DNA from: Oikopleura dioica
Taxonomy: Eukaryota; Animalia; Chordata
Direction: 5' to 3'
Assembly (NCBI GenBank): GCA_907165135.1
Contig: OU015569.1
Coordinates: 11,656,001-11,720,000 of the forward strand
Length of the DNA: 64,000 nt
Shown: one piece after another, positions 6,791-55,480 of the stretch
How the letters are laid out: every line of letters starts with the position of its first letter
How positions within the stretch are numbered: the first letter of the stretch is position 1
Notes under the pieces: generated by a model
What the model saw: the letters and a program-made list of their open reading frames with translations, nothing else
What the model was told of the DNA's origin: nothing
Database searches by the model: none
Made by a program: the position numbers and the translations under genes

Positions 6791-7001
6791 CTGAGCTTGG
6801 GAACCGGTGCAGAAAACCTGAGTCAGGCTGTAAAAGATCGTAAATGGAAAGCCGCGCAGCGGCTTTTCGAAAAACGAAGCCGGAAAGCGGCTTCGCCAGA
6901 ATTTGCCAACAGATTGAAATTGACTATTTCAAATACTAATATTTCCATTTACGATCTTTCACAGCCTGACTCAGGTTTTCTACACAGGTGGCTAAGCTCA
7001 G
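6791..7001. mobile_element. Family A MITE with two internal hairpins
   Basis: About 35-bp TIRs plus AAGCCGC-GCA-GCGGCTT and AAGCCG-GAAAG-CGGCTT. Confidence 0.85.
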
Positions 7002-9078
7002 GAAGAAAGAGGATGAAGAGCTGAAACGTCAGTAAATTCGGTTGTTTAAGTTCGCTCTTGAATTTATTTTGGTGGCAAATTCTGATCGGCAAACATCGAA
7101 TTTATAATTTTGGTGAATGTTTTGGTGCAATTCTTTTTATTTATGCACAAGCGGGGCCGGGATGAAATTTCCATTCCGTAATCCCATTTTGAGAAATAAA
7201 AAGATAATAATAATTGTAAAGTGCGGGGGTCAGAGCAACGGCTGCTTGAAAATCAAACAGGGTTGAAAAAATGGGCGCTGTTCGGAATGGGATTAGCTTG
7301 TTTCCACACCTCAATTTTCAATCGGCGCATTATAAAAATTACGCCAAATCCATCAAAAGCAAGAGGCCTTCTGCTTTTTTCTCGAATTCGGCAATTTTGA
7401 ATTTGGCGAAAAACACCGCTCGCGTGAAATTCCGACAGAATGAAGCAACACTGGAAGAATTCTCTTTGTAAACAAAATAAAGCTAAAACAAAATAGAAAT
7501 AGAAATGCGAAATTCCGAACTTGTTTCGCCCCCAGTTTTTTTTTTCTCACATTATCATGAGAGCATTCCAGTTGACACCACATACATCCAAGGCAAGCTA
7601 AGGGGGTAGGCATCGATAATGGCCAGTTTCGTAAAGCCAATTCTCTAAGAGTTATCACAATGACACCCTTATTTTACTAAAGAAATTTCAACCTTCAATA
7701 TTCATCTACTGTATAACCCCTTTTTCAAAAATTAACGTAGAGATACCCTTATTTCGATCAGTCAAAAACATAGCCGTATCTCTAAATCAAACCCTAACCC
7801 TAACCTAAACAACTTTTTTCTTCAAGAAATCACGTAAAGATACCCTTATTTTGCCGCTTAATCTAACCCTAACCTCTAAATATCAAAAATCTATTTATTA
7901 AAATTTTGTTTCATTTTTCTTTTTTTAATAATTTTCTTCTTCAATCCCGCAATCGAAAAAAGCCTCCCTCTCCGCCTAAGAGGATACTTTTCTGCCCTTT
8001 TCCAAGATTTAATATAAATAATAAAGAATTAAACTTTATTTAGCAGCGAGGCTGAGTGGTCGTCCACTTTCATTTCAAAATCGTTTTGATCTCGGACTTT
8101 GACTAAAATGGGTTTATTATCTTAGGAGGAAAACTTAAACTCAAGTGTCTCCGGCGCGTTTCAACCCCAAGCTCCGAAAATGCTTATTTAAAAAAATCCT
8201 TTTGTTGATTGCTTTTTTAAAATTCAGAACTAAAAAGTTAAGGGGTTAGACTGCAGTAATTAGGTTTTCATTGAGGCTTTTCTCTTGAAATTTACATAGT
8301 GAGGCCCTTATTTTGTGGCCTGAAATAATGCTAAGGCCCTTATTTAGTTTTTCTTAAACACCAAAATTTAGCAAGCATACACCCTTAAGTGGCTAGAGCA
8401 CGTGAGAACTGACCCTCTTCAGGACTTTATACAGGGTTGGAAATCGTTTCTTTTTATTCAAATAAGGGTGTCTCTATGTCAGCTCTTCGAGATAAGTTTG
8501 GACAAAGGTTGAGTTATCGACGTCTGCCCCCTTAAAAATGAAGATGACTACTAGTAAGTAGTAGCTTCTTCCAGAAACTCGGCGCTGGGCTAGTTTTAAT
8601 TTCTCAGCAACAGAATTCGACAAATTTGCAAAAGTATATCTGGCGCCAGGATATTGGATTATTTTTACGCAAATCGGCAGTGCCCCTTGATGTCGATGAT
8701 TATTCACAATACAAGTGAGAGAAAAGCGTAAGGAGCTCAATTCTGGTGTGAAGTGCTCGTTGCCGGAAACACGGATCGGGCTCGAGATTATGGATTACTT
8801 CCTTCGTTAGCCAAAAGCGTTAACAAATTTGGAAAAATTATAAAATACGAATTACGATTGGGGAAACGCCTTGTCCATTTTGCTTGTCAAAAAAAAGAGC
8901 GACGCCCTAAAGCTCTATTTATCAAATAATTATATTAGCAGCTTATCACTGCTGCCGTTTTTTCTTTCTTTTTTGGACATTTCGAGAATTAGGATTCACC
9001 ATTCGATGCTCTCTTAAAATATTGATGAAAAATTAAGGCTGTACACGTCCTTAATTTCAGTCTTCAGAGGAACTTGTG

Positions 9079-9323
9079 TCCGGAGATTAACAAAGAGACG
9101 CCCTTATATTTTCTGCTAAGATTTTTCTTTAGGCCTTCTTTTGTGAGCGGCAACCTGTGCAGAATCCTGAGTCAGGGTCCTGATTTAGGACTCCCGAAAG
9201 AACTTCGGTATTTCCGGACCCTGACTCAGGTTTCTTGACAGGTTGCCGAGCCAATAAGTATAAAAAGGTCTAAAGAAAAATTTTGGCAGAAAAAATAAGG
9301 GTGTCACTGTGTTATCATCCGGA
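9079..9323. mobile_element. Composite palindrome: family A core (9143-9252) inside arms carrying the AATAAGGGTGTCAC motif
   Basis: Outer arms TCCGGA-GATTAACAAAGAGACGCCCTTAT... and ...ATAAGGGTGTCACTGTGTTATCA-TCCGGA are inverted copies. Confidence 0.8.
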
Positions 9324-9991
9324 GAAATATACGGAGAAAGACACCTGCAATTTTTTTTGCCGAGGAATTGCAGTTGTTTCTGTCATTTCTTGATTATGCG
9401 TGTTGGTGAGAAAGAGTAGTACTTTTTGATTTCGGCACTATTTAGTTGCATTCGTGGTAGCGTAGCTTTTTTCGAGTTGTTGGGAAGGATTGAGCGGGCC
9501 AGCTGCGCCAGTTGCGGCCTTGTAAAATCACTTCAATATCAAATAAGGATGAGAAAATCTGAAAATGGCGGCGACTATGTAAGTGAGAATTAATAAAATT
9601 AGTGTTTCGCCCGCCGCCGGTGGTTGTACCTTCTGCCCAGCACAGAAAAGTCCAGATTTTACTTCTCTTGAGACTTCAAGTCCCACACTGAAGATTCAGC
9701 ACTTCTATAATTCTCATCAAAAACCTAGTTGGTAATTTTTGAGATCTTTAATCGCAGTTCTGGCAAATAACGTGCATGCTATTGAGATGATTTACGGTTA
9801 TTTTGAAGCTTTTACGAAAAGAAGCTTTGAACAAATTTTAACGCTAGTTTTCATCTTTGAATCTGAATGTCGTTGGACTAAATGGCTCGATTTGGGGTTT
9901 TAATCTGATTGAAGAAACTGGCATGCACTGCTTGGCGCATTTGAAATCAGTTTTTCTAATAAAAGCTCGAATATACTCCAATTTTTTTTCA

Positions 9992-10742: not shown

Positions 10743-11377
10743 AGATTGAGTTTTTTTTTAAATGATTTTTAGAAAACACCAAGAAGGGATGAAAAGAAGT
10801 CTCCATTGATCACCTAAAAGTCTGAACAGCTTTTTCAAGTATTCTCTTCTTCATTTCTTGCTCAAAATTATCTTAGAAGCAAAACAATAAATTTCGAAAA
10901 TAAAAAAATATTTCAAGTGAAGTTTATTGCAATTCTTTGTTTATTATTTTCATCCCCAAAGGTGCTCGAAGTTTTATAATTGTGACATTTCAAAGGGATT
11001 AATACTGTCTCCGCGCTTGGATTTGTACCGGTTGGCGAGGCGCATTTTGTTGGGCAGTTCCATCACACAAGTTCTAATCCCCTTTGATGAAACGTCGAAC
11101 AAGCTTCATATAAATCACTTATAAACCGCAGCTAAGCGAATAAATATCGCCCTCCCACTTTGATTTTTCCGGTTTCTCGCGCCTGAGCACCAAAACACAA
11201 ACAGGTGCAGCCCCACCGCACTCAAAATGTACCAAGGTCTGATCAACCGACGCCATTCTCGCTTCAGATCAAGCTTTAATGGAATCCAGCACTGCTAATC
11301 AACTCTGTTCTAGGGAGTGCATATCCTTAAAATCAACTAGAATTCGACAGTTTTGAAAAAGTTGACTTTCAAAAATT

Positions 11378-11670
11378 TAAATCAGTAACCTGTGTAGAAA
11401 CCTGAGTCAGGGTCCTGAGTCGTCTTTTGTAAAAAGCCGCGTAGCAAAAACCTGACTCAGGACCCTGACTCAGATTTCCGCACAAGTTATTAATCCCATT
11501 TTTAGCAGGTTTACTCCCTTAATTTGAAATCAGCAACCTGTGTAGAAACCTGAGTCAGGGTCCTGAGTTGTCTATTGTAAAAAGCCGCGTAGCGAAAACC
11601 TGACTCAGGACCCTGACTCAGATTTCCGCACAAGTTGTTAATGCCATTTTTAGCGGGGCTACTCCCTTAA
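11378..11670. repeat. Tandem duplication, 148-bp unit containing a truncated family A element plus flank
   Basis: AACCTGTGTAGAAACC at 11387 and 11535; both units end TACTCCCTTAA. Confidence 0.9.
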
Positions 11671-12611: not shown

Positions 12612-12911
12612 AAGGTACAAAATTGCAGTTTCTTTTTTAAATAATTTAAAAATTAAGGGTGTCATAATGTAAACTTTATAAGAAAAATCGTAGTTTCCCC
12701 CTGAGCCCGGCAACCTGTGTAGAAAACCTGAGTCAGGGTCTTACGAGGTTTTTCATAAAAGACATTTCAAACCCTGACTCAGGTTTTCTACACAGGTTGC
12801 CGAGCTCAGCAATCAAAAGAGGGCGAAAACTGCGACTTTTTTTATCAAGTTTAGATTGTGACACCCTTAATGTTTACACTATTTGAAAAAGAAACTGCAA
12901 TTTTGTACCTT
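12612..12911. mobile_element. Composite palindrome: family A core (12701-12809) inside TTAAGGGTGTCA-type arms
   Basis: AAGGTACAAAATTGCAGTTTCTTT / AAAGAAACTGCAATTTTGTACCTT and TTAAGGGTGTCA / TGACACCCTTAA. Confidence 0.85.
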
Positions 12912-12922
12912 GTTCCAGCGAA

Positions 12923-13019
12923 CTGGGCTCGGCAACCTGTATAGAAAACCTGAGTCAGGGTCCAGGTAAAGACTTTTGAAACCCTGACACAGGTTTTCTA
13001 CACAGGTTGCCGAGCTCAG
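12923..13019. mobile_element. Family A MITE, minimal form with TIRs only
   Basis: Near-perfect TIRs; the flanks extend the inverted repeat by about 16 bp. Confidence 0.9.
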
Positions 13020-18437: not shown

Positions 18438-21400
18438 ATGGCAGATATTAGCCCCAACACAATCGAAGTGACCCCAGAGTCGCCAGTCGAAACACCCCGA
18501 GAGCTAAAACCATCAGTATTCGACGAGGATGACGAAGAAATTCCCATTGTCGATGCGCCAGTTCCGTTTACCCCCGAATCCACCCCGGAAAAGGTCGGTA
18601 GCTCGGCAGACATCACCCCAGAGGATCCCCAAGAGGCAGAGGAGGAAATCGAGGAAATCGAAACAGCCCCAGCCCAGGCGCCTGATTATCTGAAACTGAA
18701 GGCTGATGTTGACCGGTTACAGAAGATCCTAACTGCACAAAATCAGCCAGCAGCTCCCGCTGCAGCTCCAGAGGTACGTACGATTCTAGAGCTAGAGGAG
18801 AGAGATAGATAGAGCGCCGGAATTTGGCGCGATAAGAAAACTCTCCCCCTTGTAGTACTGATAATAGGGGTTGGTTTATCTTTATTGATACGGCTGCGAT
18901 TTTGGTCGGGCTGGGAGTATCAATGGGACCACTGATTGGTGCTTTGTCCGCTGATCGCAGCACCGCCAGTTGACCGCGACAACCGCGACGTACCAAGTTA
19001 ATATAATACTAATTTGCCCGCGATAGCTCCTTTCTCAGACAATTTTAAATTTCACCAACCAATTCCATTTTTTCAGCCCAGCAGCGCGGAAGAAGGAGTC
19101 GACTGGAAGGAGCGCTGCAAAACGCTCGAGCTCCAGCTCCAGCAACTCGTCGCCCAGCAAATCATTCAAGCTCAGCAACAAGCCCAAGCTCAAGCTCAGG
19201 CAAATCCTGGACAAGCTCAAATGAATCTCCTCCAGCTCTTGTCGAAGACGGTTCAGTCCATTCCAGCCCAAAAGAAAGAAGAAATCCCAATCGCCAATTC
19301 CGTTTCCGCGCCAATTTCAAACCCACTCTTCCCGAATCCGCTGCAAACGTTGATGCGCCAGCGCGAAATGCAGATTCTCCAGCAACAGCAGCAACACCAA
19401 GCTGCCCAGCAACAACAGCAGCAGGCGCAGCAGCAACAACAGCCCAATCAAGACCTTCTCGGTCTCCTGAACTTCCAACGAGGACTCCAGCGACCCAGTG
19501 TTAGTCTTCCTTCTCCCTGTCTTCCTCCACGTGTTTCTAGTCCAAAGGTAAGCTATCTTTCCTGACTCGGGCTTTTACACAGGTCTGGGCTCGGCAACCT
19601 GAGAAGAAAACCTGAGTCAGGGTCTCAAAAATCAAAAATGAAAAGCCGCGTAGCGGCTTTTTAAAAACGAAGCCGCGAAGCGGCTTCGCAAAAATATTAT
19701 TCAACATTATTTTTAACTTCTGGCGAAGCCGCTTTGCGGCTTCGTTTTTTAAAAAGCCGCTACGCGGATTTTCATTTTTGATATTCCAGACCCTGACTCA
19801 GGTTTCTACTCGGGTTGCCGAGCCCAGAAATCAGTTCTTTTAAAATTTGAACCCTTTTTTTTTTAAAAAATACTGATTTTTTCGCTGCAATTTCTGATTC
19901 GTGGGAAAGGGGGAAGCAAAGAGAGAAGGAAAGTTATTCTTTCAATAGTTGCTTGTTTGCACAGTGGTGCGACAATTGGTGGTGTTTTTGGATGCTCTGT
20001 GATAAACCAGCAACGATAATACCCAACCGGTCGCTACAGAGGCCGCCCGCCGTAATCTGTCCTTGGCCACAAAAACTGATTCGCAACCGCCAAACGCAAA
20101 CTCTTTTTTTTTCTCCTTCTTACTCTTTTTTGTGAAAGTATTTTTCCAAAATCTTAATCGGCTTAGGATCATTTTGCGATTTTCAATGGAAATGTTTTCT
20201 ATCAAAAATTATCAAAATTTCTATTTTCACTTTTTACTAGAAACTGGCTACTGTTACTACATCGAAGTTTGCTTTTTCTCTCATTTGCTTTTTATTTTTT
20301 GAAAATGCCGCGGAGGCCTCTTGGCATGCAAAAATGCATGTAGTCCTGCCATGTAGTGGGATACAGGGAATAACGAGTTCCGGCCACTTATCATGACAAC
20401 TCGGGGGAAGATTTTTACGATTTTGAATCGTTTTAGTTTACAAACTGTCCGATTTGAATAAATGTACTAATTCGCGACAAAGTACACAAAACACAGCAAT
20501 TTAATAATATAAGCAAAATAATTTTTGTTAAGAAAAACAATTATAAGGGTATACCCGTCGAAAAGTCTTATTTTCCACAGCTTTTTTGTGTTTTTTTAAC
20601 AGAGTGAGACCCTTATTTAATCATTTAGAATGAATCTTTAGACCCTTGTTAATGATAAAAGTTAACGGCCCTTACCCCCTTAAGGTGTTGGAGTTTGATT
20701 TTTTTAGCGGAATTAGAGCTAAATACGGGGTTTAAACTTTTATTTAGCTTGATAAAATAAGGGTATCTCTATGTTAACTCTAAGTTAAAAGTGGCCCGAA
20801 AAATTGGTCTCAAAGTTCAAAATTTTTTTTATGAAAATATTCGAAATCGAGCATCAAATTCTAAATTTGATAAAAGGCAGTGTTCGCGACCTCTCCTCGG
20901 ATAATAACTGGCTAATTCAGGAAGATCGGAAACGCTCGAGCCCGGAGCCAACGTCTCTGCCGCTTGGTACAAAAACGGACATCACCTCACGCACCGGTAA
21001 GTTTTCAACGGTCATTTCCTCGCGCCGATTCCGGCCGCTCTTTTTTCATTAAAACACGGAGCTGACCCCGGATCAATTTGATTCTTATCGCAACACTAAA
21101 AATTAAAGCTCTAAATTAAAGCCGACGAATCGGGAGTTCAATCGGACGCCAGCGGTTCTGATGGGTCCCCGAGCTCGCCAAAACGTGCCAAGCTCGATCG
21201 CGACTCGCCAAAGACAGTTTCGCCCTCGACCAGTTCTGGAATCGGAGTGACGATGACCTCGTCGCCCAACTCGTCCTATCTCACCTCGCCGCTGCTCACC
21301 TCCGCTGTCAACGCCGGCCATCTTCAAATGCCGACTCCTCGACTCCCCGTCGCTGGATTGAGCGGTCTAATGGGCCACGCCTCCTTCCCCTTCCAGCAAG

Positions 21401-22721
21401 CCCCTCAAAAAGGTACAATCCAAACCCCCCTTTCCAGCCTTTACGTCCATTCTAGAGCTGGTAAACCACAATCATGAACCTCCACGCCACTTTCGCGAGC
21501 CGCCACAAGAACAGAAGCCCCATATTAAACGGCCAATGAACGCCTTCATGGTCTGGGCCAAAGACGAGCGACGCAAGATTCTTCAACAATTCCCAGACAT
21601 GCACAACTCCAACATTTCCAAAATTCTCGGTAAGCAAAATCGATCTCTTCTGAGAAAAATTAACATATTGATACCCTTATTTTAACCCCTCAAGCCCCAT
21701 TTTAACCCTTAACTTCTCAGGCCAACGCTGGAAAACGATGTGCGACGAAGAGAAAAAGCCCTACTACGAAGAGCAGCAGCGATTGTCCAAAGCCCACATG
21801 GCAAAATACCCCGATTACAAGTACCGCCCTCGCCCAAAACGAACCTGCCTCGTCAACGGCAAAAAAGTCAGAATCACCGAATACAAGGTAGTGCTTTCAT
21901 TCCCTTCCCCAGTCTTTCAAACCCCGATTTCTAGGAAATGATGAAGCAAAATCACCTGAACGACCAAATGAAAGGAATGGAAACGCCTCGAGTTTTCCAG
22001 GACGGTCCTCGATTTCCCTTCAACCTCACAGCTGCGAATCTCCTCGCTAACAACCTCTACCCTCAGCTAACTCACAACGCACAGGTAAAAATCCGCAGCA
22101 AATTTAAGGGTGTCAACAACCAATTCTTCAGTTTTTTCTTAACTTTTTTACATTGGGTTGAAGACAGGGCTCGGCAATCTGAGTAGAAAACCTGAGTCAG
22201 GGTCTGAAAGAGCAAAAATGAAAAGCCGCTACGCGGCTTTTCATTTTTGCTCTTTCAGACCCTGACTCAGGTTTTCTACTCAGGTTGCCGAGCCCAGGTT
22301 GAAGAAAGAAGTGACATCCTTATTAGAACAATTGCTTTCTTTTTTTGCCCTAACTAAAATAAGGGTGTCACTCCGAAAAGTCCAAAAGAAAAGAAATTCT
22401 CAAGAAAAACCCTCCGCGCTGCATATTTTGCCCTCAACAGTACTCTCCCCTTATCATTACATTTTAACTAGCACCAGTCGCTCTCTATTATTGTTGAAAT
22501 TTCAGGAGCGGCGACGTATGTTGTCTAAATATCTTTGATTTTCTGAAAAGCGCAACACTACGCCGATTAATCCCATTTACAAACTCAATTATCGTACCCG
22601 TCTGTGGTGAAAATCTCTCCCTTATTCGAGTTTCTTTTTTTCAATTTCTATTTTTCAGAGCCTGATGGGACTTACCAACGCCAACTTGCCAACATCGCTA
22701 CTGCCCAATTCCGCCGAATAA
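18438..22721 (+). CDS. SoxD: SoxD (Sox5/6/13-type) HMG-box transcription factor
   Basis: HMG box [42 protein letters not shown]...[27 protein letters not shown]; N-terminal coiled coil and poly-Q (19140-19445); GT-AG introns; last exon [20 protein letters not shown]. Confidence 0.95.
19585..19827. mobile_element. Family A MITE, full four-hairpin form, in a SoxD intron
   Basis: TIRs plus hairpin loops GTA, GAA, TTT, TAC. Confidence 0.93.
22165..22297. mobile_element. Family A MITE, one hairpin, with 8-bp TSD, in a SoxD intron
   Basis: GTTGAAGA at 22157-22164 and 22298-22305; near-perfect palindrome. Confidence 0.95.
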
Positions 22722-22882: not shown

Positions 22883-23201
22883 CTCGGCTCAGAAACCTGT
22901 GTAGAAAACCTGACTCAGGGTTCTGGAAGAATTTTAAAGAATTTTGGTGAAGCAGCTTTGCGGCTTTTTTTCTTAGAAAAGCCGCTGCGCGGCTTTCACC
23001 AAAGGTCTTTCAGAACCCTGAGTCAGGGTTTCTGAGTTTAAAAACCTGTGAAGAAAACCTGACTCAGGGTTCTTGAAGAATTTTGAATGCTTTTGGTGAA
23101 GCCGCTTCGCGGCTTTTTTTTTAGAAAAGCCGCTGCGCGGCTTTCATCAAAGTTCTTTCAAAACCCTGAGTCAGGTTTTCTACACAGGTTTCTGAGCCCA
23201 G
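22883..23201. mobile_element. Tandem dimer of a family A variant (period about 149 bp)
   Basis: Two units AACCTGTG...CCTGACTCAGGGTTCT...hairpins...AACCCTGAGTCAGG. Confidence 0.85.
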
Positions 23202-26193: not shown

Positions 26194-26359
26194 CTGGGCT
26201 CGGAAACCTGTGTGGAAAACCTGAGTCAGGGTCCTTACAGAAAATTTTAGTTATTTTGGCGAAGCCGCTATGCGGCTTTGTTTCTAAAAAGCCGCCGCGC
26301 GGCTTCTTATCAAAATCTTTTCAGGACCCTGACTCAGGTTTTCTACACAGGTTGCCGAG
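26194..26359. mobile_element. Family A MITE with two hairpins
   Basis: TIRs with the right end truncated; loops TAT and CGC. Confidence 0.85.
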
Positions 26360-26623
26360 TTTTCTATTTTATTCCGGCGTTTAATAATTTAAATTTCCTT
26401 TCATTTTTAAGCTGAATAAATCGATTTAACAAACAGTAGCTTAAAAATGGTTCTAATCGAAATTGGCTGAAAACTGCTGAACATAAGCTGCTTTCACGGG
26501 CGCTTGAATGACCAGCGCGGCAGGCGCACGTGACAATCGTCGCGACTATTAGGAGTAATTCACGTCAACTGAGTGACAAACTCGAGACGTTCTCCCCTCC
26601 TCAACTTCGTTAAATGAATATTG

Positions 26624-27146
26624 TCCAAGACTAATCCATAAATGGCTTTATTTCGGCTCCAATGAGTTGAATTAGAGCTCGAACAGCTTCTTAATTTTGG
26701 GGGAAATATCATTTTCAAGCGGCCTTTTTTTGAAGAATTAACGAAGTGATATCCTTATTTTCGTTCTCCAAAATAGATGGTTACTTGAAATAAGGGTGTC
26801 ACAATGTTAAATCTAGTCGAAACGAGAATGACAACTTTGCTCGGTAAACTATGTAGAAAACCTGAGTCAGGCTTCCTTTCTTAAAAGATTTTCAGGACCC
26901 TGAGTCAGGTTTTCTACACAGTTTACCCAGCAAAGTTGTCAGTCTCGTTTCGACTAGATTTAACATTGTGACACCCTTATTTAAAATAACACTCTATTTT
27001 ACAAGGCAATAATAAGGATGTCACTTCGATAACTCTTGAAAAAAAGGCCGCTTAAAAATGATATTTCCCCCAAAATTAAGAAGCTGTTGGAGCTCTAATT
27101 TAACTCATTTGAGTCAAGATAAAGCCATTTATGGATTAGTCTTGGA
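26624..27146. repeat. About 520-bp palindrome centred on a family A core (about 26835-26935), with two family B motifs per arm
   Basis: TCCAAGACTAATCCATAAATGGCTTTAT at 26624 is the exact inverse of 27119-27146; the arms pair throughout. Confidence 0.92.
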
Positions 27147-35808: not shown

Positions 35809-36136
35809 GAATAAAACCGCATTTCTTCCTTGATTGCGGAAAAATTTGAAACAAAAAAGCGCGATTTCTACTAAAAAACTATCCGTCCTGGGCTCGCCAA
35901 CCTGTGTAAAAACCTGAGTCAGGGCCCTGAAAAAACTTGAACAAAATACGCGCCTTTCACAAGCCTGACTCAGGTTTCCACACAGGTTGCCAATGCAAAC
36001 ACTCAACCCTTTTTTGCAAAACATCGAAGCAATCCCAAAACAAGAAGACACAACAAACGCGTGGTTAAATAAAATCATAAAATCATTGTTGTTTTTCCTT
36101 GTGGTTGCAGAAAGCGCGTTTCTCTATTCGTCTTCT

Positions 36137-38371: not shown

Positions 38372-39622
38372 CGGAAAACTGGTGGAAGTAAAGCATAATC
38401 CTTAACCGATACATTTCGTTTCTAGAAAATCGTATCCCAGTTCCAGGTATTTTTCAAAACATCGATGATTTTACCAATTTTTTTTTCGATCAATTCAAGT
38501 TACGTAACCATTTCCAGAGCATTATTTCAGGGTTGATTTTTCCCTTTATTTTTTCGTTCTGGGCTCGGAAACCTGTGTAGAAACCTGAGTCAGGGTCCTG
38601 AAAGAGATTCAGAAATACATTGAAGTAGTTATCTTGTCGAAGCCGCTTTGCGGCTTCGTTTTTAAAAAAGCCGCTGCGCAGTTTTTTACTAAAGCTGTTT
38701 CAGGACCCTATAGATCTCTAATCTCTAATGCCTCACAGACCCTGACTCAGGCTTTCTACACTGGCTGTCGAAGCAAGGAAACTGACATTCGAGCTTTTGT
38801 TCTTGACAATTTTTAAGAAGTATATTTTGAACTTTGAAATAAATGAATGAAAAGAAGTCGTAAATGCAGTTTTCTAGCCTAATTGACGGTAAAATGAATG
38901 AATATTAATTCAAATCCTCTTTTTTTTTCGTCGAACGAAAAGGGCATTTTCGCACCTCAGTCAGGTCATTACAGTATCTTCAGCAAAGGTTAACGAAGTA
39001 GTCTGAGGAGATGCTAATCTCTAACGAGCTGGAAAATTGCAACAGCAAAATAAGCCTCAAAAAAGCAAAAGAAAAGACGCCTTCAAAAGCGATTTTTGTG
39101 AAATCATGAAAGAGACCAGTGAAAATTTGGAAAATGTCTTCTTACCAGGCTGGGCACGGGAATCGAAATCGACTCTTTTAAAAATTACGAGAATTGGCGC
39201 TTGAATTTTGTAAAATTTCGGAAAAAAGAACGCTCTGGAAAGAAATTTGCTTGGATGCTGTGTTGGTTTAGTACTCTTTGCCGTGCTAATTTTTATCAAC
39301 TGGATATTTATTTCAAAGGAGAAGAAGAAAAAGGAAAAGGAACAACAGAGAGTTGCTAAATTGAAAGAAAAAAAGTAAGAACCCACTCATAAAAGAGGGG
39401 TCCCCTTAACTTCCTTTCAAGGCTTTAAGTCTTAAGGGTGTCAACAACGATTTCGCCAAAGTTTTGAGACCGTTTTAGGTTAGATAATCTAAACGCAAGT
39501 TTAATTTTTTGGATCGTTGTTGACACCGTTGTTGAAGCGACATCCTTATTTCAACAAATTCTAGTGCAAAACAGGAAGAAGCTGAGCATTACCGTCTGGA
39601 AGAGCGGCGATTGAGCAAAGTC

Positions 39623-40299: not shown

Positions 40300-42139
40300 C
40301 TAGAACTTGACTTTTCCAGGAATGTACTTGTCGATCAAGCTTTGGTAGTATTCCTTCAGTGCTGCTTTGTCGGGCAGGGCATCGTCTGACTTTGTGTACA
40401 AGTCGAAATTGCTAAAACAGGAGAAATTGGAAATCGGAAATCAAGAAGGAGTAACTTGGTTACCTGAACGCTTTCACTTCTTCCCGCATTTTGTTGTCTT
40501 CTTCAGTGCAGAAATGACCGTACGCCTTTCCGGTGTGCCAGGGGTAGAAGCTATCAAAAAGTCTTGATTTTAAAAGTAAACTTTCATTTGTCAATGATCT
40601 TTTGGATGATTTTGGTTGATTAGGGTTAGACCTAACCTCTGGGGTTAGGGTTAGGGCCAATTCAACCCTAGACCTAACCCTAACCTCGATTGGTCTTCTA
40701 ACAAAGAAACTGGCTTTTGATTGGAATCCCCATCAAATTGTACCAAACCCTTGATAATGCTTCTCACCTGTGAAAGCGAATCATATACATGCCCATCTTC
40801 GGAATCGTGGCTCCATGATTCTTCAAAACTTGGTAAAGATACTCGTCATGGCCCCACGACATTTGCAAGTTGTTGATTCCGCAGTTTTTCTCGTACATTC
40901 CGTATTTCGTGCTACAGGCATTATTTCAAAGGACTATTCTTTGAGAAAACTGACTTGTATTTTGGATTCATCTGGTCCTTGCATTCATCAAAGGTGTCCG
41001 CGGAATAGACCACTTCCTGTTTTTCGGCTTCAATTTGAGCTCGTCAACCTGTGTTGAAAACCTGAGTCAGGGTCTGCAAAGCTTTTTAGCGCCACTTTCA
41101 GACCCTGACTCAGGTTTTCAGCACAGGTTGCCGAGTTCAGGCTTCAATAATAATTACTAATTATTAATAAGTTTTGTTATTAGCGAAGTTTTTCTGTATA
41201 AGAGGCCGTTAACTTTGCTGGAGCACAACCCACGGGATAAATGTCCCCAACAGCGGCCCACTGTGGCTTTTGCGAAGTCGAAAAAGTGATCGAATTGAAA
41301 ATTGGATTATGAAGAGTTATTACCTCCGGAGATGATAAATTTAATTGGATTAGGCTTATGAATTATGATGATCGGAAATAGAGGTGTTTCGAACTCGCAT
41401 TCCTGCTCATAAAAGCACATGATCTTGCCAAGGTCGTGAATGAGGCCAACCAGGTGCATCCAGTCGCGCTCCGGGTAGGATTTGCGGATTCCCTCGGCTG
41501 TCTGGTACGCGTGGTACACGTTCGGCACATCGCAGTCCGGATCCGACTCGTCGATCAAGTCGTTAAGGCGATCCAGAGCTTCCATGATCGTCAACGACTC
41601 GTGGTCGAAGTTCATCCACTTTTTCCGCTGCTCAAGGCCGAATTGAACCGTCTGGTTCGTGTGCATCAAGCGGTAGGTTCGTTTTACTCGCTCGAAATGC
41701 TCAAAACTCAATCGAAAAAGAGACGTTTTGGAAGCTTACTTTTCCTCCTTCGGAATAGTCTCTGAAAGCGTCGGGTAATTTATCGGCGAATTCGGGATCA
41801 TCTGGGCGGAATTTCGTGCTTGGATCGATTATTATCTGAAAAAAAGAACGATCAAAAATCTAAAATTCACGGAAAAATTTACAGTTTCTTCAAAAAATAA
41901 TAGAGTAAAACCCTTATTAAAGACCATTTTTAAACACCAGCCAAACATGGGCTCGGCAACCTGTGTGAATTTCCTGAGTCAGGGTAAAAATAGATCGAAA
42001 TGATAATTTGGCAAATTTCTCAGAACCCAGACTCAGGATTTCTACACAGGTTGCCGAGGCCACCGCCGAAAAATAAAGAATCTTCTCAAGAAAACTGAAT
42101 GTCTGAATGTGTATTCTGAATCTCACTTACAACAGTCAT
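40300..42139 (-). CDS. MIOX: myo-inositol oxygenase
   Basis: MTVIIIDPSTKFRPD, TYRLMHTNQT, DESDPD...HAYQTAEGIR, GLIHDLGK, QWAAVGDIYPVGC, MSWGHDEYLYQV, MIRFHSFYPWH, FDLYTKSD, YYQSLIDKYIPGKVKF*. Confidence 0.97.
41035..41140. mobile_element. Family A MITE with 8-bp TSD, in a MIOX intron
   Basis: GCTTCAAT at 41027-41034 and 41141-41148. Confidence 0.93.
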
Positions 42140-43707
42140 CTCTTGTCAAGAGTCTATTTCTATCTTTGAAATAAAAGAACGATTGGACTCGTAAATAAAA
42201 TTGTCCGTGGGCGAAGAAAGGCAAGAAACCGTCAAACAAAATGTCACGTTTAGAAATTGTTTTGAAATAAAAAAGCATCGAAGATTAAGATTAGACAAAG
42301 CAAACCAACTTTGGACAACGCCTTGCGAACTTTGAAATTCTCGTGTTTCTCCCGGATGAACTATCAATCCCGGGGTCAAAATAAGTCAATAAAAGAACAA
42401 GGAGAGAATTGCCATGTTTGTGCTTCTAGCGCTATATATTAAAAACAGCATTAAATTTGAAAGAGGGTCAAAAAGATGTGGCGAGATCTGAAAATCACCC
42501 CGAATTTTCAATGAATTTCAATGACCCTGACTCAGGTTTTCCACTCAGGCTGCCTAGCTCAGATTCTAGCGACAAGACCAATTTATGGAAGTGATTTTTT
42601 GGATAACCAATAAGATTGCTGTATTTGGGCAACCGGCCAATCAAAACCCTAATCCATGAAATCACTTCCATAAATTGGTTTAACCCGATTCTAGCGCAGC
42701 AATAGTAAAAGCAGAAACCTTTGAATTTACATGTTCCATCCTCTATTTTTTTTTGATAAATGAAGTTTCGATAACTGAACACTTTTATATCCAAATTTAA
42801 GCGACAACTAGAAAGAGTTCTGGATTCTAGAATGAGTTCTATAATTACGAATCGGAAAGGAAGAATGAGCGTGGAAACAGCTGGCGAGTTCTGGGCATTA
42901 GAATTGATGGATTCTACATCTACTTGCGCAGTTCTTTTTTAATTGAATTTTCGAAGGACCAATAAATAAATATCTCATTTATTATAAATCCATCGAGCGC
43001 ATTTCTGAGCCCCTGGCTTCAGTTCTAAAGTCTTTACTCAGCTCCAGGGATTGAATCTCTCTCTCAACCAGATCGACCATTCGCAGCCGACAAGAAGTCG
43101 ATAAGATTACAGTTACAGCTCGTTTTGTAGAGTAAGAGAGACAAATAAAGGAAGACGAAACTGGAATAACCCTTGCATTTGAATTTTGAACCAAGGTTAG
43201 AGAAATTCGCTTTTACGCGAATTTCGCTGTTTAATAATTTAGCGATACTTTTGTAGCATAATTGTCAAGCCCGAAATGAAGCCGCTTTCACGATCAAGAG
43301 GCTAGAGAAAGAAGAAAAAGAAAAAGCGACTGAAGAAGAAAGAGAAAGAAAACGAGAATTTCTGCGAAGGAAAATGTTAAGCGAGCCGGTAGCTAGCTAG
43401 TAGAGTGGGTGAAAAATATGGAAGCTTCCTTCATCTTTCCGATTTGTATCATGGCCTCGACGATGATGATTACAGAAGGTTTGCCTCAGTTCTCAATAGT
43501 GGAGTGTTTTCTGCAGAGATTTTTCAAGCTATCAGATTTCGAGGGCCATCAGATTAGTTCAATTATTGATAAAATTTTAGTTTCCATAAATCAGGTAGCC
43601 CGATAGAACCGATTCGATAGTCCGATTCTAGTTCATAATTTTTTTGAGGGACTTCAACCCTAACCGTAACGTTTTTAATGAAAAATTTTTCATCCTTAAC
43701 CCTAACC

Positions 43708-43951
43708 CTGGGCTCGGCAACCTGTGTAGAAAACCTGAGTCAGGGTCTGAAAAGGCTGAAATGAAAAGCCGCGAAGCGGCTTTTTTTTAAACGAAGCCGC
43801 GGAGCGGCTTCGCTAATATTCTCATTACAATCTATCAGAAATTCTGGGGAAGCCGCTTCGCGGCTTCGTTTTTGAAAAGCCGCTACGCGACTTTTCATTA
43901 AAGATCTTTCAGACCCTGACTCAGGTTTTCTACACAGGTTGCCGAGCTCAG
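43708..43951. mobile_element. Family A MITE, four hairpins
   Basis: TIRs plus loops GAA, GGA, TTC, TAC; abuts CCCTAA repeats. Confidence 0.93.
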
Positions 43952-44030
43952 CCCTTACTTTAACCTAACCTTCTTACTGGTCTTATCCATTTTTTGAGCA
44001 AGTTTTTAAGACTTCTCGACATGCAGTGTT

Positions 44031-48939: not shown

Positions 48940-49925
48940 TGTTTTATTATCGATGTACAGTTTGAAGAGATTGTGGCAGGTTGTAGGACAAGTGAAAGAA
49001 GCAGATTTACAAAAAAGGGATTTGACTTGGCAAATGTAGCGGAACTCGCGGTCGCATTTTGAAGGGTACCATTTGTAGCCGAATTGCAGGCCCGCGGACT
49101 GAATGCACCGCTCCGAGCGCTAGAATCGTTGAAAAAAGGGGATGAGTGGTAGAACTTACTGTGGGGCGGATTTCTCCATACCAGTTTTGGAAAGAGCTGT
49201 CAGTGACGGTCGTATTGGCCACCCAGCTGAGGCGATCGCTTTCTTCGTCCAACGACAATCCAACGCAGTAGGAAGTGTCCTGAAAAGTTATTTCAATCAG
49301 TGGTGTTATAAACCTGAGTCAGAGTTTTAAGCTGCTCATTAGAAAGCCGCATAGCGGCCTTTACAAGAACGAAGCCGCAAGCGGCTTCGCCAAATAACCG
49401 TTTGAATTAATTCTCTAAAACTGTCGAAGCCGATTTGCGGCTTCGTTTTTGTTAAAGCCGCTACGCGGCTTTCTGTTGAACATTTTCGAGCCCTGACTCA
49501 GGTTTTTAGCGATGGTTGTCGACCGGAATTTCATTCAATTCGAAGATAATAGCCATCTTGCTTGACTTACATAAGAGCTGCCTCTGATCAAATTCGTGAT
49601 AAACAACATTGTGTCCTCGTCCTTGATCACCGCCAAAGATCCACCCTGTCTGTTACATCTCTGCTCGGCCGCCTCCCACGAGCGCTTGTCCTTGCTCAAG
49701 TTGAAGCAGAAGCTTCCTTTCTTTTCCCGTGGCCGGCGCACCGGAATCGCGCGTCTTTAATCAATTTCTTTGAGCATTTTTGAACTCGGAAAGAGCTTCA
49801 CTTACTTTGTAAGTGATGCTTCGTAAAGTGCGCCACTGCTGAGTTCGACTCGGCCTGGGCGTTGAGGCGTTTTTCGTGCTCTTGGATTAGAGCTTCGTCG
49901 CGGCTTTTCCATTCCAAGAGTTTCT
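48940..49925 (-). pseudogene. C-type lectin gene (coiled-coil neck plus CTLD), apparently degenerate and lacking 5' exons
   Basis: GSFCFNLSKDKRSWEAAEQRCNRQGGSLAVI, SYCVGL, FQNW, RCIQ...KWYPSKCDREFRYICQ. An apparent 1-nt loss near 49727 removes the first CTLD Trp, and the WxGL motif reads CVGL. Confidence 0.6.
49308..49530. mobile_element. Family A MITE, four hairpins, in a lectin intron
   Basis: CCTGAGTCAG / CTGACTCAGG with loops ATA, AAA, TTT, TAC. Confidence 0.8.
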
Positions 49926-50636: not shown

Positions 50637-51258
50637 GAGCTAATGAAAGACAGACTATTTATACCTACTTTTTGCTAAGGAACCTGTGTGGGAAACCTGA
50701 GTCAGGGTCCTGGAAAAGCTTTGATAAAAGCCGCTTTTCATCAAAGCATTTCAAGAACCCTGACTCAGGTTTCCTACACAGGGAGCCGAGCCTAGTCTTG
50801 TCTATTTAGGACCCTACTCTATCAATAGAAAGAATTATTAAGGGAGTATCAAACAAATCTGCAACCCTAGAAAGCCGTTGGTTGGCGCTGCTACGAAGAA
50901 TCAAAAGAGCCGGATATTCAATTGCCTTGCAGTGTCGACCAAAAACTCATAATTTCAAAAGAGATCGACAAGCAAACCGGGTTGCCCGTTATTTCACTCA
51001 CTGACAACACAAATTTAATAAAAGTCGAGTACATCTAACTTTTTCGTTTTTAGATTTTATTAATTTGAATATCAGTAATTGCACGGAAATAAATGAACTA
51101 CAGAAAATGAGTGAAGCAGAAAGTAAAAATAATGAGTGACTCATTATGAGTCGCTAAAGTTGTTCTTTTGTTTTTTCAAGTTACAGTTTCTTGAACGAAA
51201 TTGAAAGAAATTGATTATTTTGAGGAGTAAATACAAGAAAAAGGTCTAATAATGTTTT

Positions 51259-53556
51259 CTAACCGGCCTTGCCGAGTTCGGTCTTTATCAAAAGCTTGTT
51301 CGTTCGGTGGATGAAGGAGTCGAGGATCGAAGAAATCGTCCAGACGCCGCCGATGATCGCGCAAACTGACGTGGCGAAATGAACCAACGATCGGCGAGTC
51401 TCCGTCTAATAAAGAATGATAAGGGGGTAGCAGTCGTTGTTTTTATCTTTCTTCTAACGTTTCTTCTGGTGTAAATGTCCTTTGCAAAAGAACCTGTGTC
51501 AGATAAAAGCCGTTTTTGTTAATCTTTTCACTACTGTATGAGTCTGGACTCCTAAGCTGTGTAAGAAACCTGAGTCAGTCTCCTAGAAAAACTTTGAACT
51601 ACAAATTCAATCTAATTTTTCAGCTGAGGCGAAGCAGTTTCGCGGCTGGGTTTTTAAGAAAGCCTCTTTTCATCTTTCATCAAAGCTCTTCTAGGACCCT
51701 GACTCAGGGTTTTTACACTGGTTCCCGAGCTCAGAGTCCAGTAGTAGAGAAAATTCAACCGAAAACGGCTTTTATCGCCGGCTTCATCCTTATTTTTATA
51801 AAAAAAGAACTGTAGCTGTACCTTGATAACTGCAATAGGCGCAATTTCGAAGTGAAAGTTGATGCCTGGAAGTCGACTGCTCATCTGGCTGAGCGCTTTT
51901 TCATGCCGCGTCACCGAGAATTGATTCGTCGCCGTCTGCGTTCCGTCCAGTTTACGGAACTCGGTTGGGATCACCTTGAAGTTGTAGTGCCAGGCCATGT
52001 TCAGCGCCTCAGCTTTGTGCTAGAATTGAAAATTAGAGCAGATCGAAACAGTCAAAACTTACTTCGGAGTTGTCCAGTGGATTTTCTTGGCCGGGGAAGA
52101 CTTCGCCAAAGCTCAAGTGATGGATTGTGTGGCTAAAGAAAGCTTGATGGCAACAGTTGTTATTCGGCATGTTTACCTAGTATCGAAATTCATGTGCTTC
52201 ATCCCTCGAATATCGTGAACAACGCTTCCATCTAAAACGAGCGTCTTTCCAGGCGAAATCTGCAGCGATCCAGAAACTCGATTTACTTCCAAATGTCCGT
52301 GAACGCGGCAACTCTCTCCCAGCGTCTTTTTCAGCTCTTCTTCCAAGTTGAAATGCTCTAAAAACAAAGCCGCTCAGAAAAAATCCTCGAAGACAAGAAT
52401 TACCGTTGACGCACTGGGAGAACTGCTGAGCGCTAGAATCAAACGCCCAGCCCTTGTTTCTATACGCTTGTTGGACTTCTTCGCAGGAATTGCAGCAGGG
52501 GTGTTCCTCCGTTTCCGCACCGTAGCAACTTTGGCACTCGTCTTCTTTCAACGCCAGGCCGGTTTCTTCTTCTTATTTTGGATCAGAGAGAATTTAGCGC
52601 AAACTTTGCTCGGCGATCTGTGTAGAAAGATGACTCAGGGTCCTGAAATAGCTTCGCTAGACCTTTAAAAGATATTGAGACCCTTACTCAGGTTTCTAGA
52701 CAGGTTTTCAAGCTCAGACGCGAAGAAATCAGAAAAATAATATATTTAATTGATGATCCTTTCCTTTCTTTTCATCTTGAAGCTTTTGCGCGTTGATTTC
52801 TTCGACCTTCTCCGAGTTCGAAACTTCTTTTCCGTCCTTCATCCTCGTCTTGAATAGCTGATGTTCCGCGTCTGCTCTGTCTCCCGTCAAATCCATCGCG
52901 TCGATCGAAAAGTAGTTGCATGGCAAACCAGCTACTGTCAGATCCAGGTTTAGCACTAGCTTGCCCCCGCGAGTATTGTCCACTCGTAGCTCCGATACAA
53001 CCTTGAATTTGAGTTCTTTATCTTTCTTAACTTTTCTACAAAACACTGCGCAATTAAGAAATTTTTCCATCAAGCCTCGGATTGGTCGAACAATCAAGAG
53101 TTCCAAATCAATGGAGAAGCGTACCTGATTGTTCGACTGATCAAAGAATGAATAGAAAATGACCATCTGGGCTCAGCAACCTGTGTAAAAACCTGAGTCA
53201 GGGTTCTGAAAGAGCTTTTTATTGGAGCTCTTCCAAAAAACCTGACTCAGGTTTCTACTCAGGTTTCTGAGCCCAAATGGTCGTTACTGAGCGACGCTTC
53301 TGTAGAAAAATATAAATACGAGTAAATAAATTAGTTTAATTCAATATTAAACTTATCAAAATACAATTAGTAAAAAAAATCTGATGTAGAACTCTTCCTC
53401 AGTCGTCAAATAATAATTCAGCTCTGAGAAAAAGAGCAGCATGCAAAGAAGACTGCAGCATATCGTAATTACGGCGCCGGTGACAGTCCTTTCGCGGAAA
53501 TCCTCGACTGGCTTGGTGTACGCGTCAAACTTGCGAATTTGGCTGAGGAAGCCCAT
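51259..53556 (-). CDS. ERGIC3: ER-Golgi intermediate compartment protein 3 (Erv46)
   Basis: IRKFDAYTKPVEDFRERTVTGAVIT, LPCNYFSIDAMD, CQSCYGAE...CCNSCEEVQQAY...GW, CRVHGHLEVNRVSG, HTIHHLSFG, NQFSVTRH, CAIIGGVWT, end ELGKAG*. First intron has a GA donor. Confidence 0.95.
53167..53276. mobile_element. Family A MITE, minimal form, in ERGIC3 intron 1
   Basis: TIRs; the flanks GACCAT/ATGGTC extend the inverted repeat. Confidence 0.88.
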
Positions 53557-53629
53557 CTTCGATTCGTCGTCAGTTCTCGTTCATCCTTAATTCTTCGGAC
53601 AATTCGCTCCCGAGATGAGAAGCAGCGCC

Positions 53630-53670
53630 GAGCGACCAATCAGCGCGCGCCATATTTGAACCCGCCTTGA
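53630..53670. promoter_or_regulatory. CCAAT box and GC-rich segment upstream of ERGIC3
   Basis: GACCAATCAGC about 80 nt upstream of the ERGIC3 ATG. Confidence 0.4.
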
Positions 53671-54203
53671 CGACGCAAAATTCTACCTATTTTCGCAGTG
53701 TTAGTACCAAAAACTCGCTGGTACTTCTGATGCGACAAAAAGGGTTGAGAATTAAGGGATGGAGACCCTTAATTTCGATTCCCTTTTCGTCCCTCTATTC
53801 TTTCTAATGACCGAAAATTGGGAAATTCTAGCGTCAATTGCTCATCAAATTTGTTGTTTCAAAAATACCAGTTTATTCTTTGGCGCTTGGGATAAGATTA
53901 AGGCTTTCCCATCCTTATTTTCTCTTGAGAAGTAAGGCCGGGAGAGCCTTAATCTCAGCCCTAAATGTCATCAAATAAACCGGCATTGACAGTAAAGTAT
54001 CGCCAGTACCGTATTGCTTGAACAATGAATTTCAATGAGCATTCTCGGCTAGAACTTTCCAATCGGTCGTAAACTAAACTACGAAAAGAAGGTTTTTATA
54101 TTTGCATAATCCACTGACATTTCGACAAGATTCGACACCTGCTCTCAAAAATACGATTCGCAGAGTCATTTCAAGAGTTTTAGAGTTTCAGGAATTTTTA
54201 AAA

Positions 54204-55480
54204 ATGTCTTTGTTGTTTTCTCTCTTTTTTCTAACGTTCTTTCACGAAGCAAGTCCGAAAATAAGTAAGTTTTTCGAAAAATAAAAAGTGCTAAAGTGGA
54301 GTTGAAAGGTGGATCGGAAGGCTGGTTCCCTGGAGCGGACGGTTTCGCCTATGAAATCGACGAAGAAAAGGGAGAGATCATTTTCAGGCTGGATGATCTG
54401 GTCGATATGCCTTACTATCTTGGAGTCGGATGGAACAACAATACTCACGACGATAGTACTCATACAAAAACCATGATTGTAAGGCTCAATCCTGGGTTCG
54501 GCAATCGGTTTCGCAACCTGAGTCAGGGTCCTGACTCAGGATCCTTCAGGACTCTGACTCAGGTTTTTAAGCAGGTTGCCAAGCACAGGCTAAAACTAAG
54601 GGTCGGCACCGACCTAGAAACCAGCCTGGATGGTTGGTTTGTCGATTTTGGTCGGTTTTTTGACAGGTATTTACAAAAAAAACGACCAAAATCAGACCAA
54701 AACCCAAGCATCAAAAATGCAGGTCGATGCCGACCCTAAGCTCTTATCAAAGTTGATAATTGTAGAACTCGGAGCTGCTGATTTGGGATGGAGGATCAAT
54801 TCATAAAGATGAAAATTACAAGGGCGCGATTTGGCCGTACTTTGGAGGTCACTTTGCTGGCGGAGCCGAATGGAGGTTAGCTTTTCAAGAGTTGAATTTA
54901 CTTTACGATTTTTTAGCGAGCAAGCAATGACTTACTGGAAGCGAACGCCAGGATCGGCTCATCCAGATGGAAAGCCGCGCTGGTCGCGAACTCTGAAGCG
55001 GCCGGAAGGATGCAGCAAATGCATTGAAATCGAAAAGAACAAAGAGTACTGGGTCATGTCCGCTCGGGGGTCGACTTTCGACGGCGAAGGCAATTGGAAG
55101 AGACAAAAAGAAGACCCAAAATACGCGGCGTGGTCCGACTGGCCCGGCCCAAGAGCTGGCTATCATGTAATTTTAATCTTAATTGAGTCGGATATTGAGT
55201 TGGTTTGTTTAACAAGAATTCTAGTACGCAAAAACCCAGCGAGAAAAAATCATCATCTGGAAAGAACATGAATTCGACAATTTGTGTAAGATGCCCCTCT
55301 TTCAAAAAACTTTTTCAAATCAGTCTTTCAGATCACATGACAAACCATCACGAAGACGCTTGGAACAAACGAGTGGACTCGATTGGACAGAAAAATCTAA
55401 CCAAAGTCCCGCAGAATTCAGCTCAAATCCTCTGTCTCTTCTCTAGCTTGCTTGTTTTCTTGGGAATAAATTTGGTTTAA
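54204..55480 (+). CDS. Secreted, possibly GPI-anchored protein, weakly DOMON-like
   Basis: Hydrophobic N-terminus MSLLFSLFFLTFF; YLGVGWNNN, RWSRTL, YWVMSARG; hydrophobic C-terminus QILCLFSSLLVFLGINLV*. The first junction phase is unresolved. Confidence 0.55.
54492..54588. mobile_element. Family A MITE, degenerate
   Basis: TIR remnants; possible TSD GCTCAATC / GCTAAAAC (6 of 8). Confidence 0.75.
54600..54736. mobile_element. MITE with GGG termini and TAA TSD (PIF/Harbinger-like by inference)
   Basis: TAA|GGGTCGGCACCGACCT ... AGGTCGATGCCGACCC|TAA. Confidence 0.75.

Follow-up and report, generated by a model that had tools for sequence, protein, structure and literature searches.

Family A is a palindromic repeat that crowds a 64,000-nt stretch of the genome of the chordate Oikopleura dioica (contig OU015569.1, positions 11,656,001–11,720,000, hereafter the window). 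The window contains 24 exact AAGCCGC-NNN-GCGGCTT hairpin modules, against a chance expectation of 0.00. Searches with BLAST, using one full copy as the query, and with an nhmmer profile built on the terminal 57 nt of the repeat delimited around 29 elements of 77–247 bp with paired terminal inverted repeats (TIRs), spanning positions 4647 to 54588; nearly all are flanked by a left and a right TIR in the correct orientation. A preliminary description of the window had counted about 30 copies, a figure that agrees with ours, except that the range begins at 4647, slightly before the 6791 reported there. We find that Family A is most probably a high-copy, fold-back-type miniature inverted-repeat transposable element (MITE) of the Okinawa lineage of O. 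dioica and a member of the hAT superfamily. The best explanation as a whole, to which we assign a probability of about 0.8, is a hAT-type fold-back MITE with hairpin loops set by descent and with arms kept symmetrical by arm-to-arm copying.

The repeat is spread far beyond the window. We searched the O. dioica OKI2018_I69 assembly (64,281,565 bp in 19 contigs), in which, by elimination, the window would lie on the X-specific scaffold; statements about the whole genome are exact-pattern counts, and roughly 250 kb (249 kb) of genomic DNA was sampled in full. The genome holds 2,650 perfect modules (control count, 0) and 1,128 + 1,124 TIR arms with at most three mismatches to a 30-mer, roughly 2,250 in total, and a first look with the full copy gave 1,815 candidates. 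Family A thus has both the size (77–247 bp) and the copy number of a MITE. The full set of 87 single-variant modules reveals its distribution: on the X-specific scaffold, all 29 lie at 0.2–3.0 or 11.5–12.4 Mb, and on the pseudoautosomal region (PAR) they are confined to 0.8–7.8 or 15.1–16.9 Mb. They correspond to the short arms, rich in repeats, and to the chromosome ends that have been described for this species (PMC8008620). Repeat libraries of O. dioica already include unnamed ‘MITEs’ (PMC8008620, PMC5240408), and none of the papers that we searched describes Family A.

Architecture and target sites

To define the element, we aligned 26 full-length copies from five scaffolds, picked by similarity to one reference copy. 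The alignment revealed sharp ends, 5′-CTGGGCTCGGCAACCTG(A/T)GTAGAAAACCTGAGTCAGGGTCTG ... CAGACCCTGACTCAGGTTTTCTAC(T/A)CAGGTTGCCGAGCCCAG-3′, that is, CTGGG...CCCAG. A full copy is a near-perfect palindrome of roughly 245 bp, comprising arms of roughly 105 bp around an asymmetric centre of roughly 30 nt, and the left and right arms of the consensus are exact reverse complements at 105 of 106 positions. Each arm consists of the TIR (positions 1–37), a hypervariable stretch of roughly 18 bp (38–56), an outer hairpin, a T/A spacer and an inner hairpin. The TIR contains two AACCTG(A/T)GT motifs and a TGAGTCA core. The outer hairpin is AAAAGCCGC-GTA-GCGGCTTTT and the inner hairpin CGAAGCCGC-(G/A)AA-GCGGCTTCG, each forming a 28-bp unit, with two units per arm. 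Folded as a single strand, a copy adopts one long fold-back structure of −130.9 kcal/mol, compared with −32.5 ± 3.6 for shuffled sequences (z = −27). Element sizes cluster near 100, 130, 165, 210 and 245 bp, corresponding to zero, one, two, three and four modules; in the sampled DNA, 29 elements carry four modules, 19 none, 13 one to three and two (nested composites) five or six.

In many copies, the hypervariable 18-nt stretch also forms a small palindrome of its own (AAAGATCTTT / AAAGAGCTTT), so that the arm is a chain of nested local palindromes. Separately, the inner part of the TIR (the TGAGTCAGG region) occurs as a tandem array with a period of roughly 20 bp (L010:2614-2762, G000:C2:12312152-12312300), which looks like a minisatellite derived from the MITE end.

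Plain duplications flank the copies that we retrieved (for example, CCGTCATC, GCGGTGGT, GTGCTTGT, AAGCAGTA and GTACAAAT). An 8-bp target-site duplication (TSD) is exact in 12 of 49 copies and has one mismatch in seven more (19 of 49 in total), whereas none of 49 reached two or fewer mismatches when, as a control, the left flank was matched against the following 8 nt. In this small sample of 19 TSDs, T occupies position 2 in 11, A position 6 in 11 and position 7 in nine, a bias that leans in the direction of the hAT preference nTnnnnAn. TSDs are also present around the module-free short forms, which have therefore moved in that form, and one copy lies inside a hairpin of another with the TSD GAAGCCGC (L013). 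The combination of TIRs and flanking TSDs is that of a MITE, the 8-bp TSD length is that of hAT elements, and both features separate Family A from HUH/Rep elements, which lack TIRs and TSDs and carry subterminal hairpins on one strand. Most of the anatomy proposed in the preliminary description holds: a non-autonomous TIR transposon, TIRs of about 38 bp (here about 40 bp), zero to four modules per element, as in our census, and 8-bp TSDs, of which the two cited, at 22165 (GTTGAAGA) and 41035 (GCTTCAAT), are both exact.

Co-variation of the two arms

Strong co-variation links the two arms of Family A. Placed on the alignment, 109 arm-to-arm position pairs remain complementary in 93.2% of cells. 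Twenty of these pairs show changes on both sides, which account for 81 cells; shuffling gives 25.8 ± 4.4 cells (none of 500 shuffles reaches 81), and sliding the register gives 6–12. Relatedness among the copies inflates these cell counts, but each mirrored pair still requires two matched events. The pattern is clearest in the hypervariable stretch, in which diversity among copies is 0.28 and the mismatch between the arms of a single copy is 0.09. Whole sub-lineages carry mirrored versions of the same sequence, TTCATAAGATTACAAATG with CATTTGTAATCTTATGAA, CTGTGTAG with CTACACAG, and GCA with TGC loops.

Around six private substitutions are mirrored, against an expectation of well under one. In one copy (L017), moreover, both arms have lost the same 3 bp at positions that mirror each other, and this deleted version is found nowhere else in the genome. 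Independent mutation cannot account for arm co-variation that includes the mirrored substitutions and this deletion, and the pattern points to templated correction from arm to arm, which would keep the arms alike. The simplest route would be ‘quasi-palindrome correction’, in which a strand folds back on itself and a template switch follows during replication or gap repair, or in which repair is templated by the hairpin. Fold-back through single-stranded hairpins is documented in yeast, and a mechanism of this kind is known for quasi-palindromes and for fold-back inversions (PMC7467729). Most private changes are unmirrored, indicating that symmetrisation is occasional; it would act now and then on individual copies and be amplified when the corrected copy belongs to a propagating lineage.

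A stronger proposal is that the fold-back build is required for multiplication, with amplification proceeding through a single-stranded fold-back intermediate or through arm-copying gap repair. Its elements would be the arm co-variation, the mirrored indels and the unusually conserved GC hairpin cassettes, and we regard it as improbable. If true, Family A would offer a natural setting in which to test the old, unproven idea that bursts of MITEs proceed by way of hairpin DNA rather than by plain cut-and-paste.

A Y-linked hAT relic with the same terminus

The preliminary description had pointed to a hAT-like transposase on the strength of 8-bp TSDs and had noted that no partner open reading frame (ORF) lies in the window. 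Indeed, tblastn searches with hAT C-terminal proteins gave no match in the window. The wider search for an autonomous element sharing the TIR led to a remnant elsewhere. Our TIR profile picked up a locus on the Y-specific scaffold (L043:1-6800, G000:C3:1855000-1861800), in which the 20 nt at positions 5278–5297 (ACACAGGTTGCCGAGCCCAG) match the T-variant right end of the MITE without a difference and stand in right-end orientation. This terminus lies 225 bp past the stop codon of a 94-codon ORF that scores 28.7 bits against PF05699, the hAT dimerisation domain (cut-off, 21.4 bits). The final 155–180 bp before the terminus are rich in CCTGT repeats, and this subterminal region matches at least 15 dispersed places in the genome at 72–89% identity. 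The similarity stops exactly at the terminus, which marks it as a genuine element end common to a second non-autonomous family.

That second family shares the last 155–180 bp, including the CCTGT repeats, and the terminus of the Y-linked relic; examples are at C5:7350874-7351439, C1:3440988-3441691 and C5:14758309-14758872, with two same-strand matches roughly 410–600 bp apart at each place. The relic itself lies in a tandem duplication of roughly 4 kb (spacing, 3,993–3,999 bp; identity, 98–100%), with a hAT 3′ relic in each unit and a 750-bp internal deletion in one of the units.

The same terminus also recurs outside this assembly. A search of representative proteins gave only five short hAT fragments. 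The closest protein relatives of the remnant are short fragments from JGI metagenomes, which are 46–63% identical to it and all PF05699-positive; the Y remnant is the only genomic locus that matches them, and likewise the sole match of protein P0007 in the genome. When metagenomes were scanned for the 17-nt terminus, most matches were chance occurrences of the 17-mer in soil and other samples and were rejected; the real relatives are a cluster from one sample (Ga0115008, 13 contigs) and a few further contigs that look marine. The elements on these contigs have this terminus followed by AACCTGT repeats, and one has the exact 8-bp TSD GTCCATGG; none contains AAGCCGC modules. One contig (L123; Ga0115008_10005994, 420-6420) is collinear with 12.477–12.484 Mb of the X-specific scaffold at 67–79% nucleotide identity, from which it follows that a public marine metagenome holds diverged Oikopleura-lineage DNA with its own elements ending in the same transposon terminus. 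That the terminus is conserved in a clearly diverged lineage whose elements differ in their interiors is what recognition by a transposase predicts.

Together, the data make membership of the hAT superfamily probable. Only the C-terminal 80–94 residues of the transposase remain at the Y-linked locus, with no DDE core and no left end found there, and neither tblastn with hAT C-terminal proteins nor the genome search with P0007 found an intact partner transposase in this assembly. The hAT pointer is thus upheld by the TSDs and by a PF05699 remnant beside a shared 20-nt terminus, and is left without an intact element or the usual terminal sequence. The motif typical of hAT ends, 5′-YARNG, is common but not universal; the consensus terminus of Family A, CTGGG, fits it at positions 1, 3 and 5 and has T at position 2, and a canonical CAGGG start is seen in a single copy (22165).

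The main alternative here is that another transposase producing 8-bp TSDs (P, Merlin, MULE or Zisupton) mobilises Family A, the hAT remnant on the Y scaffold being a nested coincidence. The CTGGG terminus, in place of the usual hAT CAGGG or TAGGG, would suit it, as would the different, canonical ends of two other O. dioica hATs (CAGGGTGTCAAATCG and CAGGGTTCCAATTTT) and the reduction of the remnant to its C terminus without a left end. However, the terminus at the Y locus is correctly oriented and sits at a typical distance downstream of the transposase stop codon, no second TIR lies nearby to mark a nested MITE, the length and base bias of the TSDs fit hAT, and relatives of the remnant protein occur only in marine-metagenome fragments, the same kind of source as the elements sharing the terminus. 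We therefore consider a non-hAT transposase unlikely.

Other candidate partners were rejected. A search of the genome with PF05699 returned nine hits, seven of which belong to a 6-kb hAT at L040:1492-7566 (G000:C5:13843991-13850065) and six further loci; this element has 79-bp TIRs (CAGGGTGTCAAATCGCGGGGGAT) with the ends CAGGGTGTCAAATCG, the TSD GTGTTAGC and an internal 30-bp minisatellite, and is present in at least seven near-identical copies, including two tandem pairs roughly 4.86 kb apart on the PAR. This seven-copy hAT, a three-gene hAT at C2:12,670,088 (950 kb downstream; ends CAGGGTTCCAATTTT) and a second Y-linked PF05699 hit (L044) all lack the MITE terminus. The region L046:6269-8767 is not a 2.5-kb TIR-bounded element but a decayed MITE and an unrelated solo end, and L052–L054 have only another repeat in common with the relic locus and no TIR.

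Hairpin loops and stems

In the sampled DNA, 126 of 148 loops are (G/A)NA when each is read from the closer end of its element inward, and 2,339 of the 2,650 perfect modules in the genome (88%) have an R-N-A loop or its complement, TNY. The preliminary description took this pattern, with (G/A)NA in the 5′ half of each strand, as a sign of selection on folded DNA; the pattern itself stands. Loop identity, however, is position-specific and set by descent: the outer loop is GTA in 53 cases, with GCA as the main variant, and the inner loop is GAA (30) or AAA (26). A ‘variable middle base’ between ‘fixed outer bases’, as had been described, mostly reflects these paralogous positions (outer GTA and inner GAA/AAA) together with a GCA subfamily, and the first loop base is no less variable than the middle one. 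The loops of the right half read as complements because the element is palindromic. The pattern is probably inherited from founder loops GTA and GAA, with frequent G-to-A change at the first base. Two other sources of loop diversity were rejected: inversion of loops (flip-flop), since no more than roughly 5% are flipped and most of these belong to nested or mis-paired copies, and general CpG decay behind the G-to-A change, since CpGs in the stems are conserved and this change is rare in the outer hairpin.

Measures of constraint set the loops apart from the stems. Nucleotide diversity among the 26 copies is 0.03–0.05 in the stems, 0.07 in the TIR, 0.07–0.15 in the outer loop and 0.25–0.28 in the inner loop. 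The first base of the inner loop is split roughly evenly between G and A and is unmatched between the arms of one copy (arm mismatch, 0.26); it switches often, while CpGs in the stems stay stable. Across the genome, around 220 otherwise-perfect modules carry a change at the third loop base (roughly 8–9%; derived from 183 + 191 matches, as R-N-Y loops are counted on both strands), compared with 87 (3.7%) for a single stem position, and the 12% of perfect modules with neither an R-N-A nor a TNY loop is at the level of ordinary decay or above it. Genome pattern counts show no excess of doubly compensated stem variants, with three T-A cases against around 110 single variants; covariation in the small stems thus lends no support to a selected hairpin. 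Like the stems, the spacer that separates the two hairpins is better conserved than the TIRs, and the 18-nt stretch from the TIR to the outer hairpin is hypervariable.

These data bear on the proposal that C-(G/A)NA-G triloop hairpins are selected as folded single-stranded DNA or cruciforms, for instance for recognition by an HUH/Rep-like or other structure-reading protein. GNA triloops closed by a C-G pair are very stable, R-N-A loops are found in 88% of perfect modules against 25% for random triplets, no part of the element is better conserved than the stems, and the whole element folds very strongly. Several observations speak against the proposal, however: the loops are the most variable part of the module, their identity follows position in the way that descent predicts, the first base of the inner loop is not matched between arms, and compensated stem variants are not in excess. 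Moreover, sharp TIRs and 8-bp TSDs misfit HUH elements, and module-free members transpose. By the criterion that the preliminary description itself set, the claim of selection is refuted, as loop bases show no greater constraint than other positions, and we consider this explanation very unlikely. The other possibility raised in the preliminary description, that the module is a linear transposase-binding site, is contradicted by the absence of modules from the subterminus of the hAT remnant and from its same-terminus relatives.

The least probable explanation, to which we give little credence, is that the hairpin cassette is used by the host, or moves on its own, as a module shared by unrelated backbones, similar to repetitive extragenic palindromic sequences and bacterial interspersed mosaic elements (REP/BIME) or serving as a binding site for a dimeric protein; strong conservation of the stems and inter-hairpin spacer beside a hypervariable flank would suit it, but every good triloop module in the 249 kb examined sits in a Family A copy, 762 outer hairpins genome-wide have the TIR core TGAGTCAG at the expected distance of 12–28 nt upstream (about what decay of the 8-mer allows if nearly all have it), an Rfam search of the window found no family match, and copies are concentrated not near genes but in the short arms, rich in repeats, and at chromosome ends (PMC8008620). 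Of 178 module-like matches, 145 lie inside TIR pairs; the other 33 comprise a few good triloop modules in copies with one decayed TIR and, for the rest, loose matches.

Proposed mode of movement and points that weigh against it

We propose that Family A moves by cut-and-paste, producing 8-bp TSDs, through a hAT transposase that would act in trans by recognising the terminal 17–20 nt and the subterminal AACCTG motifs. The hairpin modules are a family-specific internal cassette, neither serving as transposase-binding repeats nor being required for movement. The partner enzyme seems to survive in this assembly only as the decayed Y-linked C-terminal remnant, and because the partner has decayed, Family A is probably now immobile or cross-mobilised.

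Several observations weigh against this account of a hAT-type MITE with symmetrised arms. On the side of the transposase, only about 80 residues are left, with no left end and no intact copy in the assembly; the terminus has T where hAT ends typically show A; and a hAT fragment beside a matching terminus could in principle be a nested coincidence. On the side of the arms, 81 private changes are unmirrored against the roughly six that are mirrored, the mechanism of symmetrisation is read from sequence patterns, and the 26 aligned copies were preselected by likeness to one reference copy. Finally, conservation of the stems exceeds even that of the TIRs, which is not accounted for if the modules are mere cargo, and local correction within the stem does not explain it either.

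Comparison with known systems

Among known systems, Family A most resembles hAT MITEs, being short, non-coding and high-copy, with TIRs, 8-bp TSDs and subterminal AACCTG motifs, and sharing its terminus with an element coding for the dimerisation domain of a hAT. It differs from them in its second terminal base (T rather than A), in consisting almost entirely of one long inverted repeat and in having no intact autonomous partner in the assembly. Similar to Foldback-type elements such as Drosophila FB, its arms make up nearly the whole element, are built of sub-repeats, vary in length and evolve in concert. It differs from FB, however, in its far smaller size, in the length of its TSDs (8 bp, against 9 bp) and in its link to a hAT rather than an FB/MULE-related transposase. 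The likeness to Foldback elements is thus one of behaviour, not of membership. Quasi-palindrome template switching, by which imperfect inverted repeats become perfect during replication, accounts for mirrored substitutions and for the mirrored 3-bp deletion in one copy, although in Family A it is deduced from the pattern of changes, most private ones of which are unmirrored. The modules share the C-G closing pair, the G-N-A loop and the GC stem with d(GCGAAGC)-type mini-hairpins and phage N4 promoter hairpins, but the loops are the least conserved positions of the Family A module and show no sign of maintenance, and around one third are ANA. Bacterial REP/BIME sequences are likewise abundant, dispersed, often paired palindromes with GC stems; Family A is eukaryotic, is bounded by TIRs and TSDs, has no association with a RAYT/HUH enzyme and is not a member of that class.

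Family A copies and other features of the window

The copies in the window are listed in Table 1. The T-variant copy at 43708–43951 is flanked by CCCTAA/TTAACC repeats (43690–43707 and 43952–43975), an interstitial telomeric tract distant from the scaffold end. Exons of host genes lie at the edges of the window (2987–3436, minus strand; 55870–56469, plus strand; 62911–63369, minus strand), encoding an endoplasmic reticulum-lumen (KDEL) receptor, an RF-1 domain protein and ankyrin repeats. Window ORFs tested near the copies had no family match, and none of the five longer ORFs tested within the MITE-rich 6.8–54.6 kb had a match to a Pfam family.

Table 1 Family A copies and fragments in the 64-kb window.
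Feature	Position	Strand	Basis
Copy, 177 bp, one good hairpin, right part decayed	4647–4823	.	TIR profile and sequence
Copy, 211 bp, left arm with two hairpins (GCA, AAA), interior of right arm replaced	6791–7001	.	
Short form, 115 bp, without module	9141–9255	.	
Two TIR fragments in the same orientation (11382–11416, 11530–11565), remnants	11382–11565	.	TIR profile
Short form, 109 bp, without module	12701–12809	.	
Short form, 97 bp, without module	12923–13019	.	
Full four-hairpin copy, 243 bp, loops GTA, GAA, TTT, TAC	19585–19827	.	
One-hairpin copy, 133 bp, hairpin at apex, starts CAGGG, exact 8-bp TSD GTTGAAGA	22165–22297	.	
Composite, two overlapping or nested copies (22883–23053, 22985–23201)	22883–23201	.	
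Two-hairpin copy, 171 bp	26194–26364	.	
Short form, ~100 bp, without module	26835–26935	.	
Fragment, one GTA hairpin	31264–31327	.	
Copy, 166 bp, one intact and one decayed hairpin	31699–31864	.	
Short form, 87 bp	32468–32554	.	
Four-hairpin copy, 221 bp, TIRs shortened	34126–34346	.	
Short form, 112 bp	35888–35999	.	
Full four-hairpin copy, 247 bp, reference for searches	36348–36594	.	
Decayed copy, 157 bp, hairpins broken	37775–37931	.	
Copy, 219 bp, hairpins of right-arm type only	38559–38777	.	
Short form, 106 bp, without module, exact 8-bp TSD GCTTCAAT	41035–41140	.	
Short form, 117 bp	41947–42063	.	
Solo TIR	42522–42562	−	TIR profile
Full four-hairpin copy, 244 bp, T-variant TIR, within telomere-like CCCTAA repeats	43708–43951	.	
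Four-hairpin copy, TIRs decayed	49310–49521	.	
Short form, 126 bp, half module at apex	50670–50795	.	
Decayed copy, 192 bp	51543–51734	.	
Short form, 114 bp	52604–52717	.	TIR profile
Short form, 110 bp, centre palindromic	53167–53276	.	
Short form, 97 bp	54492–54588	.	

Significance

Our analysis removes as unsupported the attractive claim that DNA triloops are under selection in this repeat, and connects Family A with a hAT lineage of which a Y-linked relic is now the sole representative. Taking up roughly 0.3–0.5 Mb, Family A is among the most numerous DNA-transposon families of the smallest free-living chordate genome. The symmetrisation of its arms might be the sole feature of specialist interest, making the family a handy natural system in which to measure palindrome ‘self-correction’ in an animal germ line.

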